A DNA stretch of 64,000 nt, from contig OZ218960.1 in assembly GCA_965112735.1 (NCBI GenBank), forward strand, positions 1,860,001-1,924,000. The letters run 5' to 3'. Made by a program: the position numbers and the translations under genes. This DNA comes from Phaeosaccion multiseriatum. Lineage: Eukaryota > Protista > Ochrophyta, other classes. This document shows positions 5,397 through 64,000 of this stretch, in pieces; the stretch's first letter is position 1; the number at the start of each line of letters is the position of its first letter. The notes under the pieces were generated by a model. It was given only the letters and a program-made list of their open reading frames with translations, was not told the DNA's origin and did no database searches.

Positions 5397-6317
<921 letters not shown>

Positions 6318-6796
6318 TTACTGCTGAGAAGGCTCCCGCAAAGAAACAAAGCGCTGCTGCTGCTGCTGCTCCTCTTCGCTGCTGCTGCTGCTCCTGCTGC
6401 TGCTGATGCTGATACTGGGGCTGAGTACAGGAGGGAAGTCTTTGGCGACTCCTGGCTTGTGATCTTATAGATGTGGAAGGGTGTTGTGAAGAGAAGAGAA
6501 GGTCTTTCGGCGCTCCTGGAGCCCCGCACCCCCTCGGGTGTGAGGCTCTTTTCGGAGAGCGTTCCTCAGAGCGATGGACATGAAACTGCCTCCAAATTGG
6601 ATTTTCAAAATTAGAGCATAGAGCAGCAGGAAGAAAGAGCGAATGAGAGAGAGATAAGATAGATAGGGAGAGAGGAAGAGATATTTCAAGGCCCGGAATG
6701 GCTCAACGGAGGTTGCACTTGTATACTGTTGAACGGGGGATGGTGAGCTCGTCTTGAGAGCACAGTTCCCTTCACCGAAGAGGCACTGAGGCGAGG

Positions 6797-11179
<4,383 letters not shown>

Positions 11180-14309: not shown

Positions 14310-14439
14310 TTGAGCCCCCCCTGTTTGACGCTCTTTGACGCACTTTGACGCCCTTTTTCGAACAGATTTCATCATCTGACTCTGAACACGTTACGTAAAT
14401 TAAGGCGAATGAAGATAAACTGGGGGGGGGGGGGGGTCA

Positions 14440-14491
<52 letters not shown>

Positions 14492-14543
14492 CATGTAAAG
14501 TGCGTCAAAGTGGGTCAAACGGGGGTTCAAAGGGGGTCAAACG
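14310..14543. mobile_element. Foldback-like element with TTTGAC/GTCAAA inverted arrays, containing G-run and (TG)n
   Basis: Left ttgagcccccc..gtttgacgctctttgacgcac is approximately the reverse complement of right gtgcgtcaaagtgggtcaaacgggggttcaa. No TSD identified. Confidence 0.5.
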
Positions 14544-14648
14544 TTAGGCCCTCGGCCTATTTATATGAGGCCCTCGGCCTATTTATATGCCGCCGCCTAG
14601 GCGGCCTAGGGCAGACGCCAACTGCCGACAACTAGGCGGACGGTGGGA

Positions 14649-14935
14649 TCGGCCCTGGAAGAGGTTATCAGATTACTGATTACGGCCGGCGCAGCCGGCC
14701 TGATTACTGATTACTGCCGGCGCCAGCCGGCCTGATTACTGATTATGGCGCCAGCCGGGCCTGATTACTGATTATGGCCGGCGCCAGCCGGGTCTGATTA
14801 CTGATTATGACCGGCGCCAGCCGGCCTGATTACTGATTATGACGGGCGCTAGCCGGCCTGATTACTGATTATTGGCGCCAGCCGGCCTGATTACTGATTA
14901 TGGTCGGCGAATACTGTAACCTCTTCCAGGGCCGA
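14649..14935. mobile_element. MITE copy A (287 bp), 19-bp perfect TIR, 6-bp TSD GTGGGA
   Basis: TIRs TCGGCCCTGGAAGAGGTTA (14649-14667) and TAACCTCTTCCAGGGCCGA (14917-14935). GTGGGA at 14643-14648 and 14936-14941. Interior is 8x GATTACTGATTA separated by GGCCGGCGCCAGCCGGCC-like units. Confidence 0.92.
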
Positions 14936-15718
14936 GTGGGAGTGCCCAGAGTGCAAAGAGTAGTCGGTTTTAAGCAAATGTATTGCATGGGATTGGAAGT
15001 GAGGAGTAGAGTAGACTTGGTTCGTGTTGTGTCTTTCCGCCTCGCTGGCCCTACGAGGAGTGCAGGCCTACAGGTGTGCTGCTACTGCTACCCACTCGCT
15101 GGGCGGCACCACGCACGCGCCCACGGTCACCGGGAGGCTGCCTAGACACAGGCAGGCTAGAGCCGGCCTAGGACTGAAAAGTGAGCGGCCTAGAGCGGCC
15201 GAGGCCGCCGGCCTAGGCCTATATCGGCCGAAGGCGGAGCGGCCTAGCGGCCTAGAGCAAAAACCGCTAGGCGTGCGTGGGGCTGAAAAATAGTCGGCGT
15301 AAAAAAAAATTCACGGGCGCGTCACCAGTGCCACAAAAGAAAAATAAGAAAGTTCAGGAGAAAAAGAAGAAAACAGAAAAAAAAGGGGGCCCTTCAAAAC
15401 TCAAAACTCCTTGGCTCCGCGCCATAAATAATACATAGAGCCTGACGCAGTCCTTCACTCTAGGTAGGTACTGCTGTGATCAGCAGGCGTGTGTGCTTTG
15501 GCGTCAGCGTGTGTGTTGCTGCAAGTTGCGGGTGAGAGATAAAAGGGGAAGAATTTACCCTGTTTCCCTGCGCTCCGCATTTTTCAATCCCCAGAAGCTT
15601 CCCCCCCTGCAAACGTAAACGCGAAGCTCGCTTCCACAACGGCCAGAGACTGAACCGAATGGTCTGTTCTGCGTGTGGGGCATGAAGAGAGTGTGGGGCT
15701 GTCTTCTTCATAAGCAGC

Positions 15719-23468: not shown

Positions 23469-23886
23469 GAGGATGGTGAGGGATCCACTCTGTGGGCCGC
23501 TTCAGAGACTGCTTCTGCTTCACCCATCAGCTGCAAGGACATTCTCTGATAATACAATCGAGTGTATCTGTTACCATGCGGAAAAGGAAATGGGAAGAAT
23601 CCGGAGTGCCGCAGAGAGGGAGCTGAGCCGCCACCGCCTGCGTTTAGCGTGTGGGTGCGTATCACGTTCAGCGAGGCCATGAGGAACCCCACTCATTGGT
23701 AGAGATGGAATGGATCCTGGATGTGGACGGAAGCACACAGAGACAGAGAGAGAGAGGAGGTCACGAGGAAGCGGGCGGGGGAGGACGCCCCACCGTGGCA
23801 AGGGAGGCAGCAGTAGTAGCAGTAACAGTAGCAACTGCAAGTACCGCTGGGCCTTGCGTGACACCACCATCAACCGCGTTTGATTT

Positions 23887-24087
23887 TCGGCCCCCCGCGA
23901 GGTTTCTCTGGCTCCTGGCTTCGGGCTTCTGGCCGCAGGCCAGCGCTGGCTTCTCGGCTTTCGGCCGTAGGCCGCCTCTGGCTTCTGGGTTGCCACTCTT
24001 TCCCAGTGGTGACTGGCTTCCGCTGGTCGCAGCCCAGCCCCTGGCTTCTCGGCTATCGGGGGCCAGGGAAGCCTCGCCTGGGGCCGA
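23887..24087. mobile_element. MITE copy B (201 bp), 20-bp imperfect TIR, 6-bp TSD TGATTT
   Basis: TCGGCCCCCCGCGAGGTTTC / GAAGCCTCGCCTGGGGCCGA. TGATTT at 23881-23886 and 24088-24093. Interior GGCTTC arrays are homologous (inverted) to copy C. Confidence 0.9.
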
Positions 24088-24371
24088 TGATTTGGTTGTT
24101 GTTTTTTTAAATTTTTTATATATATATACATATTATATTTATATATATATGAGATGGAAGATCATGAGGCCCTAAGATGCAGCGCCGCAAGCAGCTTCAC
24201 ACCTCTTGCTCGCAGTGCGAGTTTCGGGTGGGACGCCGCACGCTTCACCGGCAAGCGCCCGGGCAGAGCGAGGGTCAAGGGTCACGAGTGAGCAACGTGG
24301 TCCTTCCCCTGTAGAGAGGGCATGGGCTGGTAGGTGAGTTGGGGAGGGTTTCAACCCCTGATACACTATCA

Positions 24372-24610
24372 TCGGCCCCTGACATGCTTCTGAGACAGGC
24401 CAGCCCAGAAGCAGGAAGCAGGCCGGCCGGCGCCGGCCAGAAGCAGGAAGCAGCCTTGGCCCTCGTCATTGCCTTATTACATGGCTTTCCCCCAGAACCT
24501 CGAACCTGCCTGGCCGGCTGGCGCCGGCCAGAAGCAGGAAGCAGGGTCACCTCAGAAGCATGTTCGCCCACATTCTCTCGGAAAGCGCGCCGGCTGGCGC
24601 CGGCGATGCG
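24372..24610. mobile_element. Truncated MITE copy D of the same TCGGCC family
   Basis: Left end TCGGCCCCTGACATGCTTCTGAG. Inner IR ACATGCTTCTGAG (24382-94) / CTCAGAAGCATGT (24551-63). CCGGCTGGCGCCGGCC core shared with copy A. Outer right end and TSD not found. Confidence 0.65.
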
Positions 24611-39247: not shown

Positions 39248-42200
39248 TCACCTCCAGTGATTCTTGCGGGCCACAATGTGTTGATTCACTTCCCGCAGCA
39301 CCGCATTGCAGCACCGCGTCGCCAGACGGAAAATGGGGATGCGGGGAGCGAGGTACAGCACTGGAGGAGCCTTCTCCTCATGCTCCTGCTGCTGCATCAC
39401 CAACTGCTCCTGCTCCTGCTGCTGGTGCTGCTGCTGTTGATGCTTTCTTCTTCCTCCTGCTGCTGGTGCTAGATTAGACGCCTCCTGCGATATCGAAGAG
39501 GTCGATATCGATACCTCAGATCGACATGCTAAAGTGGGGGTGGTGCGTCCCGACACCTCTGACTCGAGGCAGGATTTGCGCTTGCTGTCCAGGGGCTTGC
39601 TGTAGCCACTGCACGTTGCTTGAATGATGCACTGAGACCGACAGGGAGGAGACAAGAGGAGAGAGAGAGAGAGAAAGAGAAAGAGAGTCCAAGAGTGAAA
39701 TGGTAGCAAAACAGGGAGCCGAAAGAGGATTGGAAGAGAGTTGAGCACCTCCTTCACTCGCCCACTGACTTCCTCCCTCCCTCCCTACTTAACCCCCACC
39801 TTTCCCTCGCTCCTATTCCTTCCCCCCTTCCCCCTCTCTCCTCTCTCTTCCCCCACCCCCCTCCCCTCCCTCCCTCCCTCCCTCCCTCCCTTACCGAGGG
39901 GAAGCAGAGCGCGAACATGGCCAGCCCTGCGTAGGTGGAGCAGAAGAAGGATACGAGTGCGACAGGGGTGCCGAAGCCCAAGAAGTAGGGCCAGTGTGTC
40001 TCGATGAACGTCAGGCGGGAGGGAAGGTCCACTCCCTCCATAGACTGAAGGAGGGAGGGAGGGAAGGAAAGGGGGAGGGAGGGAGAGAAGGAAAGGGGGG
40101 GGGGGAGGGAGGGAAGGAGGGAGGAAGGGGGCGGGGGTGGTTTTGGGTCGATTTAAGTCATTTAGCTGATCCACTCACAGAGAGTGACAGGAAGGAAGGA
40201 TCAGAGTCTTTATGAGAGGCCTTGTGGCCTGCATTCCTTTCGATCTGCTTCACTGCCTCACTGACTGACTAACTGACTGACTGACTGTCTGGCTGCCTAC
40301 CTGCATCACTCACTGACTGACTGACTACCCGAGAGACTGACTCACCCACACATACTCGAAGCTGTACAGCGCGTTAATCCAGCACACCAGTACGAAGGAC
40401 AGGAACGACCCCACCACGGGTATCGTCAGGTGCGTCAGGCTTGTCTATGGTGGGGGGGCATACACATCGAGGGGGAGAAGAAGAAGAAGAAGAAGAAGAA
40501 GAAGAAGAAGAAGAAGAAGAAGAAGAAGAAGAAGAAGAAGAAGAAGAAGAAGAAGAAGAAGAAGAAGAAGAAGAAGAAGAAGAAGAAGAAGAAGAAGAAG
40601 GAGGAGGAGGGGGAGGAGGAGGAGGAGGAGGAGGAAATGAGGAGGAGGAGGAGGAGGAGGAGGAGGAGGAGGAGGAAATGAGGAGGAGGAGGGAATGAGG
40701 AGGAGGAGGGAATGAGGAGGAGGAGGAAATGAGGAGGAGGAGGAAATGAGGAGGAGGAGGAAATGAGGAGGCAGGAGGAGGGGGCAGGAGGAGGATGCAG
40801 GAGGAGGAGGCGGCGGGAGGCGGAGGAGGCAGGAGGTGGATGGATTAGGGCAACCGTAGGCGACTCGGGCGGTGCCAGCGAGCACCACATTGCTGTACAC
40901 GCAGCGCCAAGAGCAAGTGCTTGGCCACATGAAAGCAACCCCCCCCCCCACTCTCTCGCTCTCTCGTTCTCTCTCGCTCGCGCGCGCTCTCTCTTTCCCT
41001 CTCCACCTACCCACCCACCCACTCACCTACCCACCCACCCACTCACCTACCCACCCAATCACCTACCCACCCACCCACCCACTTACCCACCCACTCACCC
41101 ACCTACCCACCCACCCACTCACCCACCCACCCACTCACCCACCTACCCACCCACTCACCTACCCACCCACCCACTCACCCACCTACCCACCCACCCACTC
41201 ACCTACCCACTCACCTGTATGACTAGGAAAACGACGAAGATGGCTCGATAGACCCCCTCCGAGAGACTGACACAGAAATCAGAGGAAGCCCTTTGAGGGT
41301 GAGGGCGAGGTCCCTGCCCTCCTTGCCCTCCGTGCTGCAGCTCGTAGGCAGCGGCGGCGATCTTTGAGTACCAAATTGTGTTCATGACCACGCTGAAGAG
41401 GTACAGGGGCACTATCCAAAACACCTGCAGGCGGGGAAGGAGGGAGGGAGAAGGGAGGGACGGAGGGACGGAAGGAAGGGGGTGGGTGGGTCGCTCCTCT
41501 ACTGTGTACAAGTCGCCGTCTCCCCTTCTCCTCACCTCTTCCCTCCCTCACCTCCCTGTCTCGCATCTTTTCTCCCTCACCTGATAGAAGAGGAAAACCA
41601 ATCGATACACGACATAGTGCAGAGGCCCAAAGCCTTCCCCCCCTCCTCCTCCTCCTCCTCCTCCTCCTCCTCCTCCGCCCACTCCAGCACTAGGCACAGC
41701 AGAAGACCCTCTCCCCGCCCCCTCACCGCCACCGCTACTACCGCTGCTGCTGCTCCACTGCTGTTGCTGTTGGTAGGCGGTGTAGCGGAGAAGTAACGCC
41801 CCGAATCTGTGCAGGAGCGGCATGAGGCATCGGTCCAAGAGGAGCAGACTGCCCAGGAACAGCACGCCATTCAACAGGATACATCTACCACCCACACAAG
41901 CGATAGATCAGATGGGCAATCAATCAGCAAATCAGGAGAAATAGGGGCAAGGGGAAAGTGCTTGAGTGAGTGGTTTCAACCACACAACACGCTTTTCGTT
42001 CTTTCGGATGGATCCGTCAAGGCTGACTGTTCCTCTGTCCTACATTCCCTGCTCCACACGGCAGCGGTTGCTACGGCTGATCCTCATCCTCTTCCTATTC
42101 TTCTCCTTCTGCACCGGCTCTACAGTCGACTCTCTTCCGACTGCTCCTACTCACTCTCTGCCTCTTCTCGCCTCCTCCCTCATCCACCCCCAAGCCCACC

Positions 42201-45834: not shown

Positions 45835-48800
45835 GTATCAGTGACTAACCTTCAAAGAACTCTCCATGTCGGCGATGGTCTTGGTCATCCGTGTGAGGTC
45901 TTCCTTTGTCTCCTCCAATCGCCCGTCAAGGACGTTGCTGCGTGTTTGATTGCTCTTGACCTTGGCCAGCAGAGAGTCCTTAGCAGACTGAAAGAGAGGG
46001 AGAGGAGACGGGGGGAGGTGGGGGAGGGAGGGGGGGGGGGAGAGGTAGAGATAGATGGGGGGGAGGGGGTAAGGGAGGGAGAGAGAGGGAGAGAGAGAGA
46101 AGAGAGAGGGTCAGAGAGAGAGAGAGAGAGGGAAGGAGAAGATAGCCTCTGTTCATCTGCTACCAAGGCAGGTACTTTGGGGGGTCCATGTACCTTTGGG
46201 GTCCATGTGCATCATATTGAGGTCTTTAAGCCCTTAACTTATCTTCCCACCCACCCACCCATCGCCATCCGCCCGCTCATTTACTGCCATCTGTCCACCC
46301 ATCTGCCCACCCATCTGCTACCATCTCACCTTGGGGTCCATTTGCATCATGTTGAGTTCTTCAAGCACGCCCTCTCTCTCCTTGCGCAGCTTGGCCACCT
46401 TCCTCTCGCTGTCCGAGTAGGCGTCTCGGAGGGAGGAGTCCTGCAACGCGTGTTCGTGCTCTCGCACAGAGGCGGACACTTTGTCCACTGCCTCCTGTTG
46501 TTGGTTGGTTGGTTGGTTGGGTTGTTCGTTACGTGTGGCAGTTGGTGGTACGGCAGTAATATATATAGGAGAGGACAAAGGGTCAGAGAGCGGGTCCAGG
46601 GGGTCAGGGGGTGGGTAGGTGCATGAGTGGGTGGAGCTACGGATGGACAGATCATCGCAATATCGACAAGGAGAGGAAAGGGGCAGATAGACAGAGAGGA
46701 AGAGCAAGCCTTCCCACAACGACTTCATGCTAGAGAATACAGGGGTGACAAAAGGAGGAAACACCACAGACCACGCGGTCAGGCAGGCGGACTGAATAAC
46801 TGATTGACAGATAGACTCAGTGACTAACTGACTGATTGACAATTGACTGACAACTTCCTGACAACTCACGGGACCAACTGGCTACTGGCTGTGACAAACT
46901 TACGGACTGACCGAACTTGACTGACGTAACGGGTCGACACCAAATATGGCCCACTGACTGACCCACGATCCCCTCGTCCTGACCACTGTACCGCTGTAAC
47001 CACTGTACCACCAACGTGCTCACCTGCTTGGCGTGCAGCTCCTGCGTGAGCTCGTGGCTCTTTGCGAGAAGGTCCCTGTACTGCTGCACTCTTTGCGGGT
47101 CAAGCATACCGATCTGCTCCTCCAGTTGCCTGCACAGGTGTGTGGGGTGTGAGGTGCCAGGTGTCAGGTGTCAGGTGTCAGGTGTCAGGTGTTAATTCCC
47201 CCCCCCCCCTCCTCTTCCCGCTCTCTCTCTCTCCGTTTCTCTGTCTCCACGTACGGCTCGTTTGCTCACTCGCTCACCTGTGCAGCCTGTCTATTGCCGC
47301 CTCCTCGTCCTTCCTGGACTGCTCCCGCTGCTGCTTGACCAAGAAGATGTTGTCCAGCACCTGTATGTATAGCGGGTATATCGAAATATCAAGTCGAGTA
47401 TCGAGACATTATGGCGAGTGCGTGTTCGGGGTCAGTCATCGAGCGTCATGATACGAAACCAACTCGACCAACTAGACCCACTACATCCTCGCCCCCAATA
47501 AGACCCACGATACCCCTCCAAACCAGACCCACTATACCTCCACCAACTAGACCCCAAACTAGAGCCCCAACTCGATCCACGACCCCCCAACTAGACCCCC
47601 AACTCGATCCACGACAACCCCCCAACTTGACACCCAACTCTACTCACCTGCGCTGCCCTCCTGTTGCGGTCCTCGAGCTCATGTAGATAGGCTCCCACCT
47701 CCTCGGGGTCTGCAGTGGTGCGTGCTTTGTCCATAGCGAGGTTGTAATCCGCCAGGGTGCCCTCCAGACCCTTAACCTAAGGTAGGGTGGGATGGGGTAG
47801 GGTAGGGTAGGGTGGGGTAGGTTAGGGTAGGGTAGGGTAGGGTAGGGTATAGGGTAGGGTAGGGTAGGGTAGAGAAGGGTAGGGTAGGTAAGGGTAGGGT
47901 AGGGTAGGGTAGGGTATAGGGTAGGGTAGGGTAGGGTAGGGTAGGGTAGGGTAGGGTTGGGTAGGGTAGGGTAGGGTAGGGTAGAGTAGAGTAGGGTAGG
48001 GTAGAGTAGGGTAGGGTAGGTAAGGGTAGGGTAGGGTAGGGTAGGGTATAGGGTAGGGTAGGGTAGGGTAGGGTAGGGTAGGGTAGGGTAAGGTAGGGTA
48101 GGGTAGGGCGGGGTAGGGTAGGGTAGGGTAGGGTAGGGTAGGGCGGGGTAGGGTAGGGTAGGGTAGGGTAGGGTAGGGTAGAGTAGAGTAGGGTAGGGTA
48201 GGGTAGGGTAGGGCAGAGTAGAGTAGAGTAGGGCAGGGCGGGATGGGGTGGGGTAGGATACGGGTAGGGTAGAGAAGGGTGAGGTAACCAGCACCAGTAC
48301 CAGCAGTGGACAGCACCGCAGAGCAAGGATGCTGAGCCTTGGCTGGGTCAAGGGCCAAGCAGTCGACGCTTCGACGGGTGCCAGGGTGGGGTGGGGGAGT
48401 AGGGAAGGGGGGTCGGGGCGGTAGAAGACGCCCACGGCAATTCGATTCGCACTTGTGGCTCATTCAATCATGGACTGGCGGTTAGAGAGACTTACTTCCT
48501 TGAGGAGGCTCTCATACCGGCGCTCCAGGCCTCCATATTGGCTGTTGTCGGTGTTGTGTTGGTCCATCTCCGTACGTAGCCTGACGTACACAACACATGC
48601 ATGCATGTATCCCCCCGTTAAAAAGAGAAGAGGTGAGTGGCGGCAATCAACCGATCAATCGATCAGTTCGTCAACCAGCCAATCAATTCATCCATCAATC
48701 AAAAGGGGTATTTGTGGATAGATTCAAGTCATCGCTCTCAGAGCCGCATTCCCCAGAAAGCGAAAGCAGAGAGAATACGCAAAAGAGTGTATCGTCAACA

Positions 48801-54037: not shown

Positions 54038-54764
54038 CGCCCGCCTCCAAGGACAAGTTCACACAAATCGTGTGTGTTTGTTCCTTGGTGGAGAGGAAGG
54101 CACGGCCCCACAAGGCGCAGAGAGAGGGGGTGGGGGGGGGGGCAGCATCGTAGCATGAGGCCCGGCCCTTCGCCTTCAGTAACTTGCCTTCCTCAGTAAC
54201 TCACCAACTCAAAATATATTTTCGGTCGTCCCATGTTTCGTAAGCCAACGCGTCTTCTCCAATCACTGCCAGGCATGAAGTGGGGCACAGCCCTCCTGTC
54301 GGAAGTGCTTCAGATGCACACCGCATAACACGGCCTTGAGCAGCAGGAGGAGGTGCTCCGTGCTCCTGGCCCCCGCGTGCTTTGCGCTGCTGACGAGGCC
54401 CGAAGCCCGAGGACTCCCACTCCTTTGTGCCCTCAAACCTCTCGCCTACGAAACGAGTGGTCTCCTCAGCAGATGCCATTGGTGGTGGGTGTATGGGTGT
54501 TATTGCACAGTGGTACAAGGAGCGAGAGATGTGCAGAGGGGGGCGAGTGGAGGCCCCGCCTGCGTCCACTGTGAAGAATCTGGAGAGCCAACATGGGCAC
54601 TTCCGAATCAATTTTCTGACTTCTGACAGGCAGAGGCCAAGGAGACGGAGAGGAACCACTCTCTCTGGCGCTATGTTTGTGCGTGTGTGCGTGGGTGCGT
54701 GTGGATGTGTGTGTGTGCGCGTGCATGCGTGTGGATGTGTGCGCGTGCGTGCGTGTGTGGGTGT

Positions 54765-54996
<232 letters not shown>

Positions 54997-60450: not shown

Positions 60451-60653
60451 GGCTCGCCTCCTGCCGCTTGCCACAGAACGTCGTGCAGCGGAAGGGGTGT
60501 ATGCTTCTCAGGTCAGCCACATGTGGAAGGGTCGGAAGCTAACAGGAGAAGGGGGGGGGGAAGAGAGAAAAACAAAATACAGTTTCGTTCATGAAACTCA
60601 AACTTCAAACCCCATTTTCTTTTCTTTTTTCTTTTTTTGGCTGCTCTCCTCCT

Positions 60654-60863
60654 TCGGCTCCCCGCAGGGCTTCTCTGCCCCCCCCGATAAGCAGAAGCCT
60701 GAGGCGGCCTGTGGCCGAAAGCAACAAGCCCGGGGTTGGCCTGCGGCCAGAAGCCTGCATAATTTCTCCCCCCCCCTGAGCCCCCCTGAGAAGCCTGAAG
60801 CCCAGACCGCTGGCCTGCGGCGCAGAAGCCCGAAGCCTGAAAGGCAAGCCTGCGGGGGGCCGA
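60654..60863. mobile_element. MITE copy C (210 bp), imperfect TIR, 6-bp TSD CCTCCT
   Basis: TCGGCTCCCCGCAGGGCTT / AAGCCTGCGGGGGGCCGA. CCTCCT at 60648-60653 and 60864-60869. Interior cagaagcctgaggcggcctgtggccgaaagc..ggcctgcggccagaagcc matches the reverse complement of copy B. Confidence 0.9.
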
Positions 60864-61099
60864 CCTCCTCTCCATCCAGAGACCCTGGAAGCTTCATTTA
60901 CATAAGGAACCTTTCCACTTGGTCGCTACCTACCTTACGTACCTACCCGTCCCAGCTCCAGGGGTTCTTTCAGTCCACCAAAGACCCACGCTTCCGAATC
61001 CCCACCCCCCCCCCCTCTCCCCCTCCCCCCTCCTTCACACGATGTACTTCCCGGAGAGTCCTTCAGATCTAACGATATCAAGGGGCCGACTATCCCTTC

Positions 61100-62285: not shown

Positions 62286-62891
62286 CTCCTCCTCCTCCTC
62301 CTCCTCTTCCTTCTGTCTCCCTTCTGTGGGCCTGCTGCTGCTTGGGAAATAGGTGAATTACTTTTAGTTCCCTCCCTCGCCCTCTGTCCTCCTCCTCCTC
62401 CTCCTCCTCCTCGTCCTCCTCCTCCTCCTTTCTAAGTAAAACTGGTAAGTAGGGGAGAACCGATGGCTTCTAAAGCAGCTCTTCTCTGCTGCTGCTATGG
62501 GTCCTGGCGCTGTCTCGTGAGTGATGATTATCTCGAGGGAAGAGGAGAGAGAGAGGGAATGCCCTAATCCCTGGGTATCCCTTTTCCGTCTTACCTTCAT
62601 ACCTCGGATAGATGCGTTCCCCCTCGACGGCCGGCCACCGTAATCCTGGTCTCGCGACCCCTTCTGCGCTACTGCCTTCATTCCGTCAGGAGGGGCTGTA
62701 GGTGCAAGCTGTGCACCCATTGCACGTACTCTAAGGTGGTTGCATATTGGGTGTTCACCCATAAACGGTGGGGACGATCTTTTGGGATTTGCTTGCCTCT
62801 CTCTCCCTCCACAGCTTGGTGAGCCTTGCGGAAGGGCATAGAAGAAGCTGGCAACAGCAACAACAGCAGCTGGGAGCATTACTCGGTAGCC

Positions 62892-64000
62892 ATGGCGGGC
62901 CGGGGTAGGGGAAGGGCCAACACACTCCCGGCATGGATGACCGCCGAGGGCAAGGGAGGAGTAGAGGCCCAAGCCCCACAGCCCGGAGGACTGAACGGAG
63001 ATAGCCATGAAGGATACCGTGGAGGTGGAGAGGCCTCCTACCCTGCTGCCGCGGCTGCAGATCAGCAGCAGCAGTTCGCGGACGCCCCTTCTGGACCTCC
63101 CAGCGGCGGCGGTGGTGGCAGGGACGGTGGCAGGGACGGTGGCAGGGACGGTGGCAGGGACGACTATCGAGACTCACGGGGAGGGGACGGGAGGGGGTAC
63201 GGAGGAGGGGACGCGAGGGGGTACGGGGGAGGAGGGGGGAGGGGCAGAGACTTCGATCGCGGGGGCGGTGATCGGTACAGAGGAGGGGGGGACCGAGGAG
63301 GAGGAGGGGGCTACCGAGGTGGGGGAGGAGGGCATCGAGGAGGCTTCCGGAACAGGCGTCCTCGGAGCCCGAGTCGCAGCACTAGTCGAGACAGGGAGCG
63401 ACGAGCCGCAAGAAGGGAGCGAAGGGCGGCGCGAGGCAACATGTGGGACATGAAGCCTGCGGGGGTGGACGATGAGACCGCAAAGCAACTCATGGCGGCG
63501 GCCATTCTGCAGCAAAACGCACCCGCCTCCAACCTCAGCATCTCCGGAGGGCACCTGAACAAGTCGGGAGGGGGAGGCGGGGGAGGGGGTGGGGGAGGAA
63601 GGGACGGGGGGATGATGGGGGTGAGCATGCAGCAAACCCGCCACGCCCGGAGGCTCTATGTCGGAGGCGTGCCTCCGGTGGACGACGAGGAGCTGAAAGC
63701 CTTTTTCAACGAAACCATCCACAAAGCCACGGAGGGGAGGGTGCAATTCGAGGGGGGTAGTCCCGTGGTGGACGTGTACCTCAACCGCGATCGGGGCTTT
63801 GCGTTTGTGGAGCTCCGAAGTGTGGAGCTCACCTCAGCGGCGTGCGGGCTGGACGGCATTTCCTTCCGCGGTCAGCAGATGAAGGTCCGGCGCCCCAGTG
63901 ACTACAACCCCGCGCAGGTGCCCCCCACCAGCGGCCCGCCCGTGCATTTCAACATGGCGGCACTAGGGGTGGTATCAACGACTGTCCCCGACGGACCTGG
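62892..64000 (+). CDS. U2AF2: Splicing factor U2AF large subunit (3' end outside window)
   Basis: Open frame from ATG 62892: RGG-rich region, RS domain (SRSRSTSRDRERR), WD..P motif, TRHARRLYVGG, FAFVELRSVE, LDGISFRGQQMKVRRPSDYNP, GVVSTTVPDGP. Confidence 0.95.
   Translation, partial: MAGRGRGRANTLPAWMTAEGKGGVEAQAPQPGGLNGDSHEGYRGGGEASYPAAAAADQQQQFADAPSGPPSGGGGGRDGGRDGGRDGGRDDYRDSRGGDGRGYGGGDARGYGGGGGRGRDFDRGGGDRYRGGGDRGGGGGYRGGGGGHRGGFRNRRPRSPSRSTSRDRERRAARRERRAARGNMWDMKPAGVDDETAKQLMAAAILQQNAPASNLSISGGHLNKSGGGGGGGGGGGRDGGMMGVSMQQTRHARRLYVGGVPPVDDEELKAFFNETIHKATEGRVQFEGGSPVVDVYLNRDRGFAFVELRSVELTSAACGLDGISFRGQQMKVRRPSDYNPAQVPPTSGPPVHFNMAALGVVSTTVPDGP

Follow-up and report, generated by a model that had tools for sequence, protein, structure and literature searches.

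A putative miniature DNA transposon with exact 6-bp target duplications and a modular heptamer/hairpin interior

Genomic context

The analysed stretch of DNA, 64 kb long and from here on referred to as the window, is eukaryotic nuclear DNA of ~57% G+C that is very rich in microsatellites, and the genes it carries are split by long introns. Neither an Rfam RNA family nor a tRNA gene was found in the window. Its main landmarks, together with the element at the center of this study (E1), are as follows.

5397–6314, minus strand: polyubiquitin gene, intron-less, composed of four repeats of 228 bp with 97% DNA identity; an exact look-up of its product in the contig collection gave no record
6758–11176, plus strand: DNA polymerase epsilon subunit B gene, with pieces at 6758–7180 and 10370–11176
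14649–14935: E1, 287 bp, TSD GTGGGA
62823–63998, plus strand: U2AF large-subunit-like gene whose N-terminal half is rich in arginine and glycine, running off the window end

The introns of the DNA polymerase epsilon subunit B gene are long and full of microsatellites and C-rich minisatellites, and its last exon contains an alanine/arginine/glutamate-rich low-complexity insert. Microsatellite density in the window as a whole greatly exceeds what most protist genomes show, unusually long examples being (GGTAG) with ~99 copies (47781–48280), (TGTG) with ~80 copies (54674–54995), (AGA)/(AGG) with ~120 units (40476–40840) and (AGTG) with ~67 copies (253–520).

Protein comparisons place the host among the stramenopiles. 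The HemK-type methyltransferase ORF of the window reaches 41% identity at best, to brown-algal and other ochrophyte proteins, with brown-algal HemK-type orthologues being ~55% identical among themselves. The RRM region of the U2AF large subunit matches oomycete, Tribonema and Chrysoparadoxa proteins at 57–63%, and a protein word search returned no relative of the sulfotransferase-like ORF. One exon in the window presumably resembles a tocopherol methyltransferase, as judged by eye, which would suggest an alga. As far as these sequences tell, the host of E1 is a stramenopile, and no close relative of it is represented in the protein collection.

E1 lies ~0.4 kb upstream of a minus-strand ORF with a signal-peptide-like start, and several other repeats are found in its immediate surroundings. 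A foldback-like structure just upstream of E1 (14317–14536) has inverted arms of 29 nt at 90% and 40 nt at 75% complementarity, which are built of 10-bp TTTGACGC-type tandem units and flank a G run and a (GT)23 microsatellite. No TSD was visible around this structure, which may represent a further small mobile element. A perfect 22-bp tandem duplication is present at 14546–14589, and clusters of short GGCCTAG-containing repeats are located on both sides of E1 (14546–14640 and 15160–15265). E1 may have inserted into a pre-existing repeat.

Ends and target duplication of E1

E1 is a non-coding, miniature element bounded by terminal inverted repeats (TIRs) and flanked by a short direct target duplication (TSD). 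Its parts are listed below in the order in which they occur.

14643–14648, no strand: left TSD copy, GTGGGA; read directly, identical to 14936–14941 and recovered by a motif-anchored TIR plus TSD search
14649–14667, plus strand: left TIR, 19 bp, beginning TCGGCCC; exact reverse complement of 14917–14935
14668–14916, plus strand: array of eight ~32-bp modules in one orientation, with a short spacer before the right TIR; from TRF, motif matches, core matches and hairpin folds
14917–14935, minus strand: right TIR, the second of the two 19-mer matches
14936–14941, no strand: right TSD copy, GTGGGA; read directly

The two arms pair at all positions (19/19; 100% complementary, with 249 nt between them according to the repeat finder). 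Within the window, the 19-mer has exactly two matches even when up to three mismatches are allowed, compared with an average of 0.01 in shuffled sequences. GTGGGA stands directly outside both arms, and extension of the duplication to 7 or 8 bp fails. When the window was searched for exact TIRs of at least 12 bp flanked by TSDs of at least 4 bp, E1 was the sole structure of MITE size. Reversing a sequence preserves its inverted repeats and is therefore unfit as a control for such a generic exact-TIR search; motif-anchored Markov simulations took its place.

No ORF of more than 39 aa starts inside E1. Folded as a whole, the element reaches −73.4 kcal/mol compared with −44.5 kcal/mol for shuffles (z = −7.6). 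A second copy of E1 itself was not found in the 64 kb, which do hold two intact relatives and one fragment, and comparison of the flanks as they stand revealed neither an empty site nor a paralogous E1 flank in the window. The original prediction, which had described E1 as an intact MITE, is supported by the perfect TIR and TSD and further by these two intact relatives and the fragment, which have the TCGGCCC terminus in common with E1.

The internal array

The interior of E1 is built from a module that consists of two CTGATTA heptamers, a T and a GC-rich hairpin core. The motif GATTACTGATTA is found in eight copies spaced 29–33 bp apart, the motif CTGATTACTGATTA occurs eight times inside E1 and nowhere else in the window, and CTGATTA was counted 15 times in the array. 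TRF reports a period of 32 with 7.5 copies and 88% matches and, above it, a 126-bp higher-order period at 91% matches; the longer period suggests that a block of four modules may have been duplicated.

GC cores are recognizable in seven modules, the eighth being degenerate. When the seven cores were folded as DNA, four gave hairpins with stems of 5–7 bp and energies of −6.6 to −9.1 kcal/mol, while the other three, which are truncated or mutated, folded no better than shuffles. Because three cores have decayed, there is no sign of strong selection on the E1 hairpins. The array had originally been read as eight hairpin/GATTACT units, of which the eight motif copies stand, whereas the hairpins come down to seven cores with only four clear folds. 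The 18-nt core quoted for E1 at that time does not occur exactly in the element, where the best copies are 1–2 mismatches off; the exact 18-mer is present only at 24512–24529 on the minus strand, in the fragment referred to below as F. E1 had also been called recent. This is plausible given that both TIR and TSD are perfect, yet the modules have diverged from one another (88% matches) and three of the cores have decayed.

All modules of E1 point one way, whereas transposase-binding sites typically form subterminal repeats that are inverted and present at both ends. By analogy with several cut-and-paste families, the heptamer repeats may be regarded as candidate subterminal protein-binding sites.

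Relatives of E1 in the window

To identify relatives, the window was searched for inverted pairs of ends with at most one mismatch to the 7-base terminus, 60–8000 bp apart and flanked by an exact 6-bp repeat. Five pairs were found, three of which have a TIR identity of at least 16/20 and correspond to E1 and to two further intact elements, E2 and E3. A one-ended relative, F, was located through pattern matches and BLAST.

23881–24093, plus strand: E2, intact; element at 23887–24087, 201 bp, with TSD TGATTT on both sides; terminus-anchored search
60648–60869, minus strand: E3, intact; element at 60654–60863, 210 bp, with TSD CCTCCT as read on the plus strand; terminus-anchored search
24372–24605, minus strand: F, one-ended relative with three modules and its terminus at 24372; pattern matches and BLAST

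Pairs of the quality of these three were absent from 100 first-order Markov simulations of the window, in which pairs of any TIR quality average 0.66, and the reversed-sequence control for this terminus-anchored search likewise gave 0 pairs. TIR identity is 17/20 in E2 and 16/20 in E3. The TSDs of E1, E2 and E3 are exact and 6 bp long in each case and lie at three unrelated target sequences; that of E3 lies in a CT-rich tract of low complexity, which makes a 6-bp match less surprising. The recovery of two further intact elements, set against 0 of 100 simulations, argues for a real MITE family with a fixed 6-bp duplication. The absence of other genomic copies had been named at the outset as an observation that would refute the proposal, and this point is partly answered by two intact relatives and one fragment within 64 kb.

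The TIRs of E2 begin with TCGGCCCC, as does the F terminus at 24372. Across the seven termini of the group, columns 1–5, 7, 15 and 18 are identical in all seven and column 6 in six. At positions 13–18, the left arm of E2 carries the six bases found in the two E1 arms, with which it also shares positions 1–7. Based on these conserved columns and on the common positions 13–18, the TIRs are homologous and their likeness goes beyond one of composition.

The interiors of the elements are related as well. Allowing for indels, E2 and E3 can be aligned as a single family, and they have an exact 18-nt internal block in common. Each contains five heptamers of the type CTGGCTT or CAGGCTT, the former being found in E2, and short GGCC-loop-GGCC hairpins that are shorter than the E1 cores. 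In F, the GC cores of the modules are 0–2 mismatches away from the 18-mer and thus identical or nearly identical to the E1 core, and in two modules the core is preceded, on the minus strand, by two CTGCTTC heptamers and a T. A module pattern with N at the variable heptamer positions matches E1 and F only, with seven matches found and 0.01 expected, and BLAST ties the E1 units to F with 87.5% identity over 32 nt (E = 3e-5). No convincing second terminus or TSD for F was found in the window. Since F has the same core and E2 and E3 carry heptamers with shorter hairpins, the array of E1 is no foreign satellite and represents tandemly multiplied copies of a building block that E1, E2, E3 and F share. 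It may have grown by replication slippage or unequal exchange, which the hairpins would favor.

E2 is located ~0.4 kb downstream of an ankyrin-repeat ORF and E3 ~0.2 kb upstream of a minus-strand ATG. Insertion near genes is usual for MITEs. Between E2 and F lies a sharply AT-rich island (24100–24152) of T and A runs and TA repeats in a window of otherwise 57% G+C. Within F, a perfect 13-bp inverted repeat (24382–24394 and 24551–24563) encloses two of the hairpin modules.

Searches for a transposase and for copies beyond the window

The 150 longest informative ORFs of the window were compared with Pfam, which gave matches to 34 families. Of these, 25 were listed, the other nine being single-ORF matches with E above 2.7e-6. 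The listed matches represent host genes, namely ubiquitin, ankyrin, DNA polymerase epsilon subunit B, RING and Tim10, and none of the 25 listed families is a transposase or integrase family (rve, hAT dimerisation or BED).

Beyond the window, metagenome contigs contained three single exact matches to the E1 TIR, all of which lie inside bacterial coding sequence without any element structure and were dismissed as chance. Viral contigs yielded 0 matches to the E1 TIR, to the E1 module junction and to a degenerate E2/E3 TIR. In the full texts searched, the TIR and module strings of E1 were found in unrelated primer sequences only.

Discussion

E1 to E3 combine TIRs and a TSD of constant length with a small size of 201–287 bp, and E1 lacks a transposase ORF. 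We consider it highly probable (roughly 0.88) that E1 is a non-autonomous TIR DNA transposon (MITE) and belongs to a group of small elements that have a TCGGCCC-type terminus and an exact 6-bp target duplication in common. A transposase encoded elsewhere would bind the conserved outer TIR positions, that is, positions 1–7 and approximately 13–18, excise the element and insert it at a 6-bp staggered cut, whose repair would leave the target duplication.

That E1 is no transposon at all, being instead a minisatellite flanked by chance by an inverted and a 6-bp direct repeat, or else a solo LTR or a Polinton-like miniature, is very improbable. The interior of E1 is indeed a tandem array, and the Polinton-like viruses of algae, which encode an rve integrase, do generate 6-bp TSDs and occur in ochrophytes (PMC12220804). 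A chance arrangement is, however, excluded by the expectation of 0.01 for the 19-mer pair and by the finding of three independent elements where 100 simulations gave none. The TG..CA ends of LTRs are absent from E1, and chance, solo-LTR and foldback readings were all rejected on grounds that include the simulations and these missing ends. Polinton-like elements measure 14–40 kb, with TIRs running to hundreds of bp (PMC12220804), as opposed to 287 bp and 19 bp in E1, and the three E1/E2/E3 patterns had no counterpart in viral contigs. Dada elements, for which 6-bp TSDs are putative, target fixed positions within tRNA or snRNA genes (PMC8869645); they were rejected as a source of E1, the three target 6-mers being unrelated and the window containing no tRNA or Rfam RNA gene.

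As to the superfamily, E1 might be a miniature derivative within IS3EU/GingerRoot, mobilized by a retroviral-integrase-like (rve) DDE transposase that gives 6-bp duplications, an assignment that we regard as possible though doubtful. TSDs are "usually 6 bp" in IS3EU and mostly 6 bp in GingerRoot (PMC10045372, PMC6839031), and 6 bp is the length seen in all three intact elements here. The outermost bases of the E1 group are T...A as in IS3EU/GingerRoot, and when fungal IS3EU termini (TAYGG..CCRTA) are set beside TCGG..CCGA, little beyond the second base differs (PMC12730594). Complete IS3EU/GingerRoot families, however, always end in TA..TA or occasionally TG..CA (PMC10045372), whereas all seven termini of the E1 group read TC..GA. 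The TIRs of the E1 group, at ~19–25 bp, are also far shorter than the >30 bp of IS3EU (PMC12730594) and the 100–150 bp of GingerRoot (PMC6839031), and no rve-type ORF was found in the window among the Pfam families listed. We have left the E1 group outside IS3EU/GingerRoot because the defining TA..TA termini are absent. A miniature hAT of the 6-bp-TSD kind (hAT6-like) appears unlikely. Short TIRs and short repeated internal sub-motifs are common in hAT derivatives and count in its favor. Against it, the E1-group termini are, we assume, unlike the motif usually cited for hAT, and neither a hAT dimerisation nor a BED domain was present in the window among the Pfam families listed. Families of hAT with 5-bp and 6-bp TSDs have been named hAT5 and hAT6 (PMC12730594), and the E1 group agrees with the latter in TSD length; both nevertheless lie within an animal hAT lineage (PMC12730594), while the host of E1 is, by its sequence, a stramenopile.

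The transposase behind the E1 group could thus be a divergent integrase-type (IS3EU-like) enzyme, a hAT6-like one or something undescribed, with the integrase type as our leading single guess due to the T...A ends and the 6-bp TSD. The original prediction had noted reports of 6-bp TSDs in Polintons, IS3EU and some atypical hATs, and the literature does contain them in hAT6 and in rve-integrase elements. It had further proposed a possibly undescribed lineage; given that 6-bp TSDs exist in these known groups, a new superfamily is no more likely than a divergent branch of one already known.

We also considered an introner-like reading in which the TIRs of E1 double as splice signals, so that an insertion into an exon would be spliced out and leave an in-frame remnant. 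One arm (14661–14667) contains a donor-like GAG|GT with the GT at 14664–14665, and the other (14920–14930) a pyrimidine tract followed by an acceptor-like CAG|G with the AG at 14928–14929. Because the arms are inverted copies of each other, these splice-like motifs hold in either orientation of E1. Introns of the window have the donors GTTGGT, GTGAGT and GTAAGT and pyrimidine-rich acceptors that end in AG|G. The predicted remnant of 15 + 6 nt plus the 6-bp TSD amounts to 27 nt, a multiple of three, and is free of stops in every frame. Introners of MITE type that have TIRs and TSDs and add a length divisible by 3 nt are documented from several algae, among them Aureococcus (PMC9860276). On the other hand, E1, E2, E3 and F all look intergenic or UTR-proximal, with none placed in an intron of a coding region, E2 and E3 have no convincing acceptor tract, and in GC-rich sequence either property of the remnant, its length divisible by three or its lack of stops, is fairly likely to arise by chance. 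We regard an introner-like E1 as improbable, and would give similarly little weight to the wider proposal that the TCGGCCC-ended elements are miniatures of a cut-and-paste lineage uncatalogued in stramenopiles with the E1 TIRs serving as splice signals. If true, this would represent an introner-type element with new transposition chemistry that could be removed from transcripts in either orientation at the cost of a 27-nt in-frame remnant. The splice-like TIRs could tie the element to intron gain in algae, should transcript data agree.

On its own, the MITE reading of E1 matters modestly, since protists that have been little studied routinely yield new MITE families. Its signature, a 6-bp duplication of fixed length combined with TC..GA ends, disagrees with the termini on record for known superfamilies with 6-bp TSDs and is therefore well suited to tracing the transposase responsible within the complete genome. 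The modular interior, common to sibling families and expanded to a minisatellite in E1, is in addition an example of transposons seeding tandem repeats.

Comparison with known systems

Several known systems resemble the E1 group in some respects and depart from it in others. IS3EU and GingerRoot likewise have a 6-bp TSD, a 5' T and a 3' A (PMC10045372, PMC6839031, PMC12730594) and differ in their TA..TA ends, much longer TIRs and integrase-like transposase. hAT6 elements agree in their 6-bp TSD and short TIRs but form part of an animal lineage (PMC12730594). Polinton/Maverick elements and Polinton-like viruses also combine a 6-bp TSD with TIRs and are found in ochrophyte and cryptophyte genomes; in contrast to the E1 group, they are protein-coding, 14–40 kb in size and bounded by TIRs of hundreds to thousands of bp (PMC12220804), and the window contains nothing of this type. 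Dada is similar in its putative 6-bp TSD and differs in targeting fixed sites (PMC8869645). Algal introners are MITE-like elements with TIRs and TSDs, and in some of them both splice sites are part of the element and the transcript retains a length divisible by 3 nt (PMC9860276). E1 resembles them in its TIRs and TSD and in the donor-like and acceptor-like TIR motifs with their predicted 27-nt remnant.

With MITEs generally, the E1 group shares its small size, TIRs, fixed-length TSD, non-coding nature, location near genes and the occurrence of related families side by side. The Stowaway and Tourist groups make TA or 3-bp duplications, whereas those of the E1 group are 6 bp long and at unrelated sequences. 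E1 also departs from MITEs in general in its interior, where tandem copies of a heptamer-plus-hairpin module all run in a single direction.
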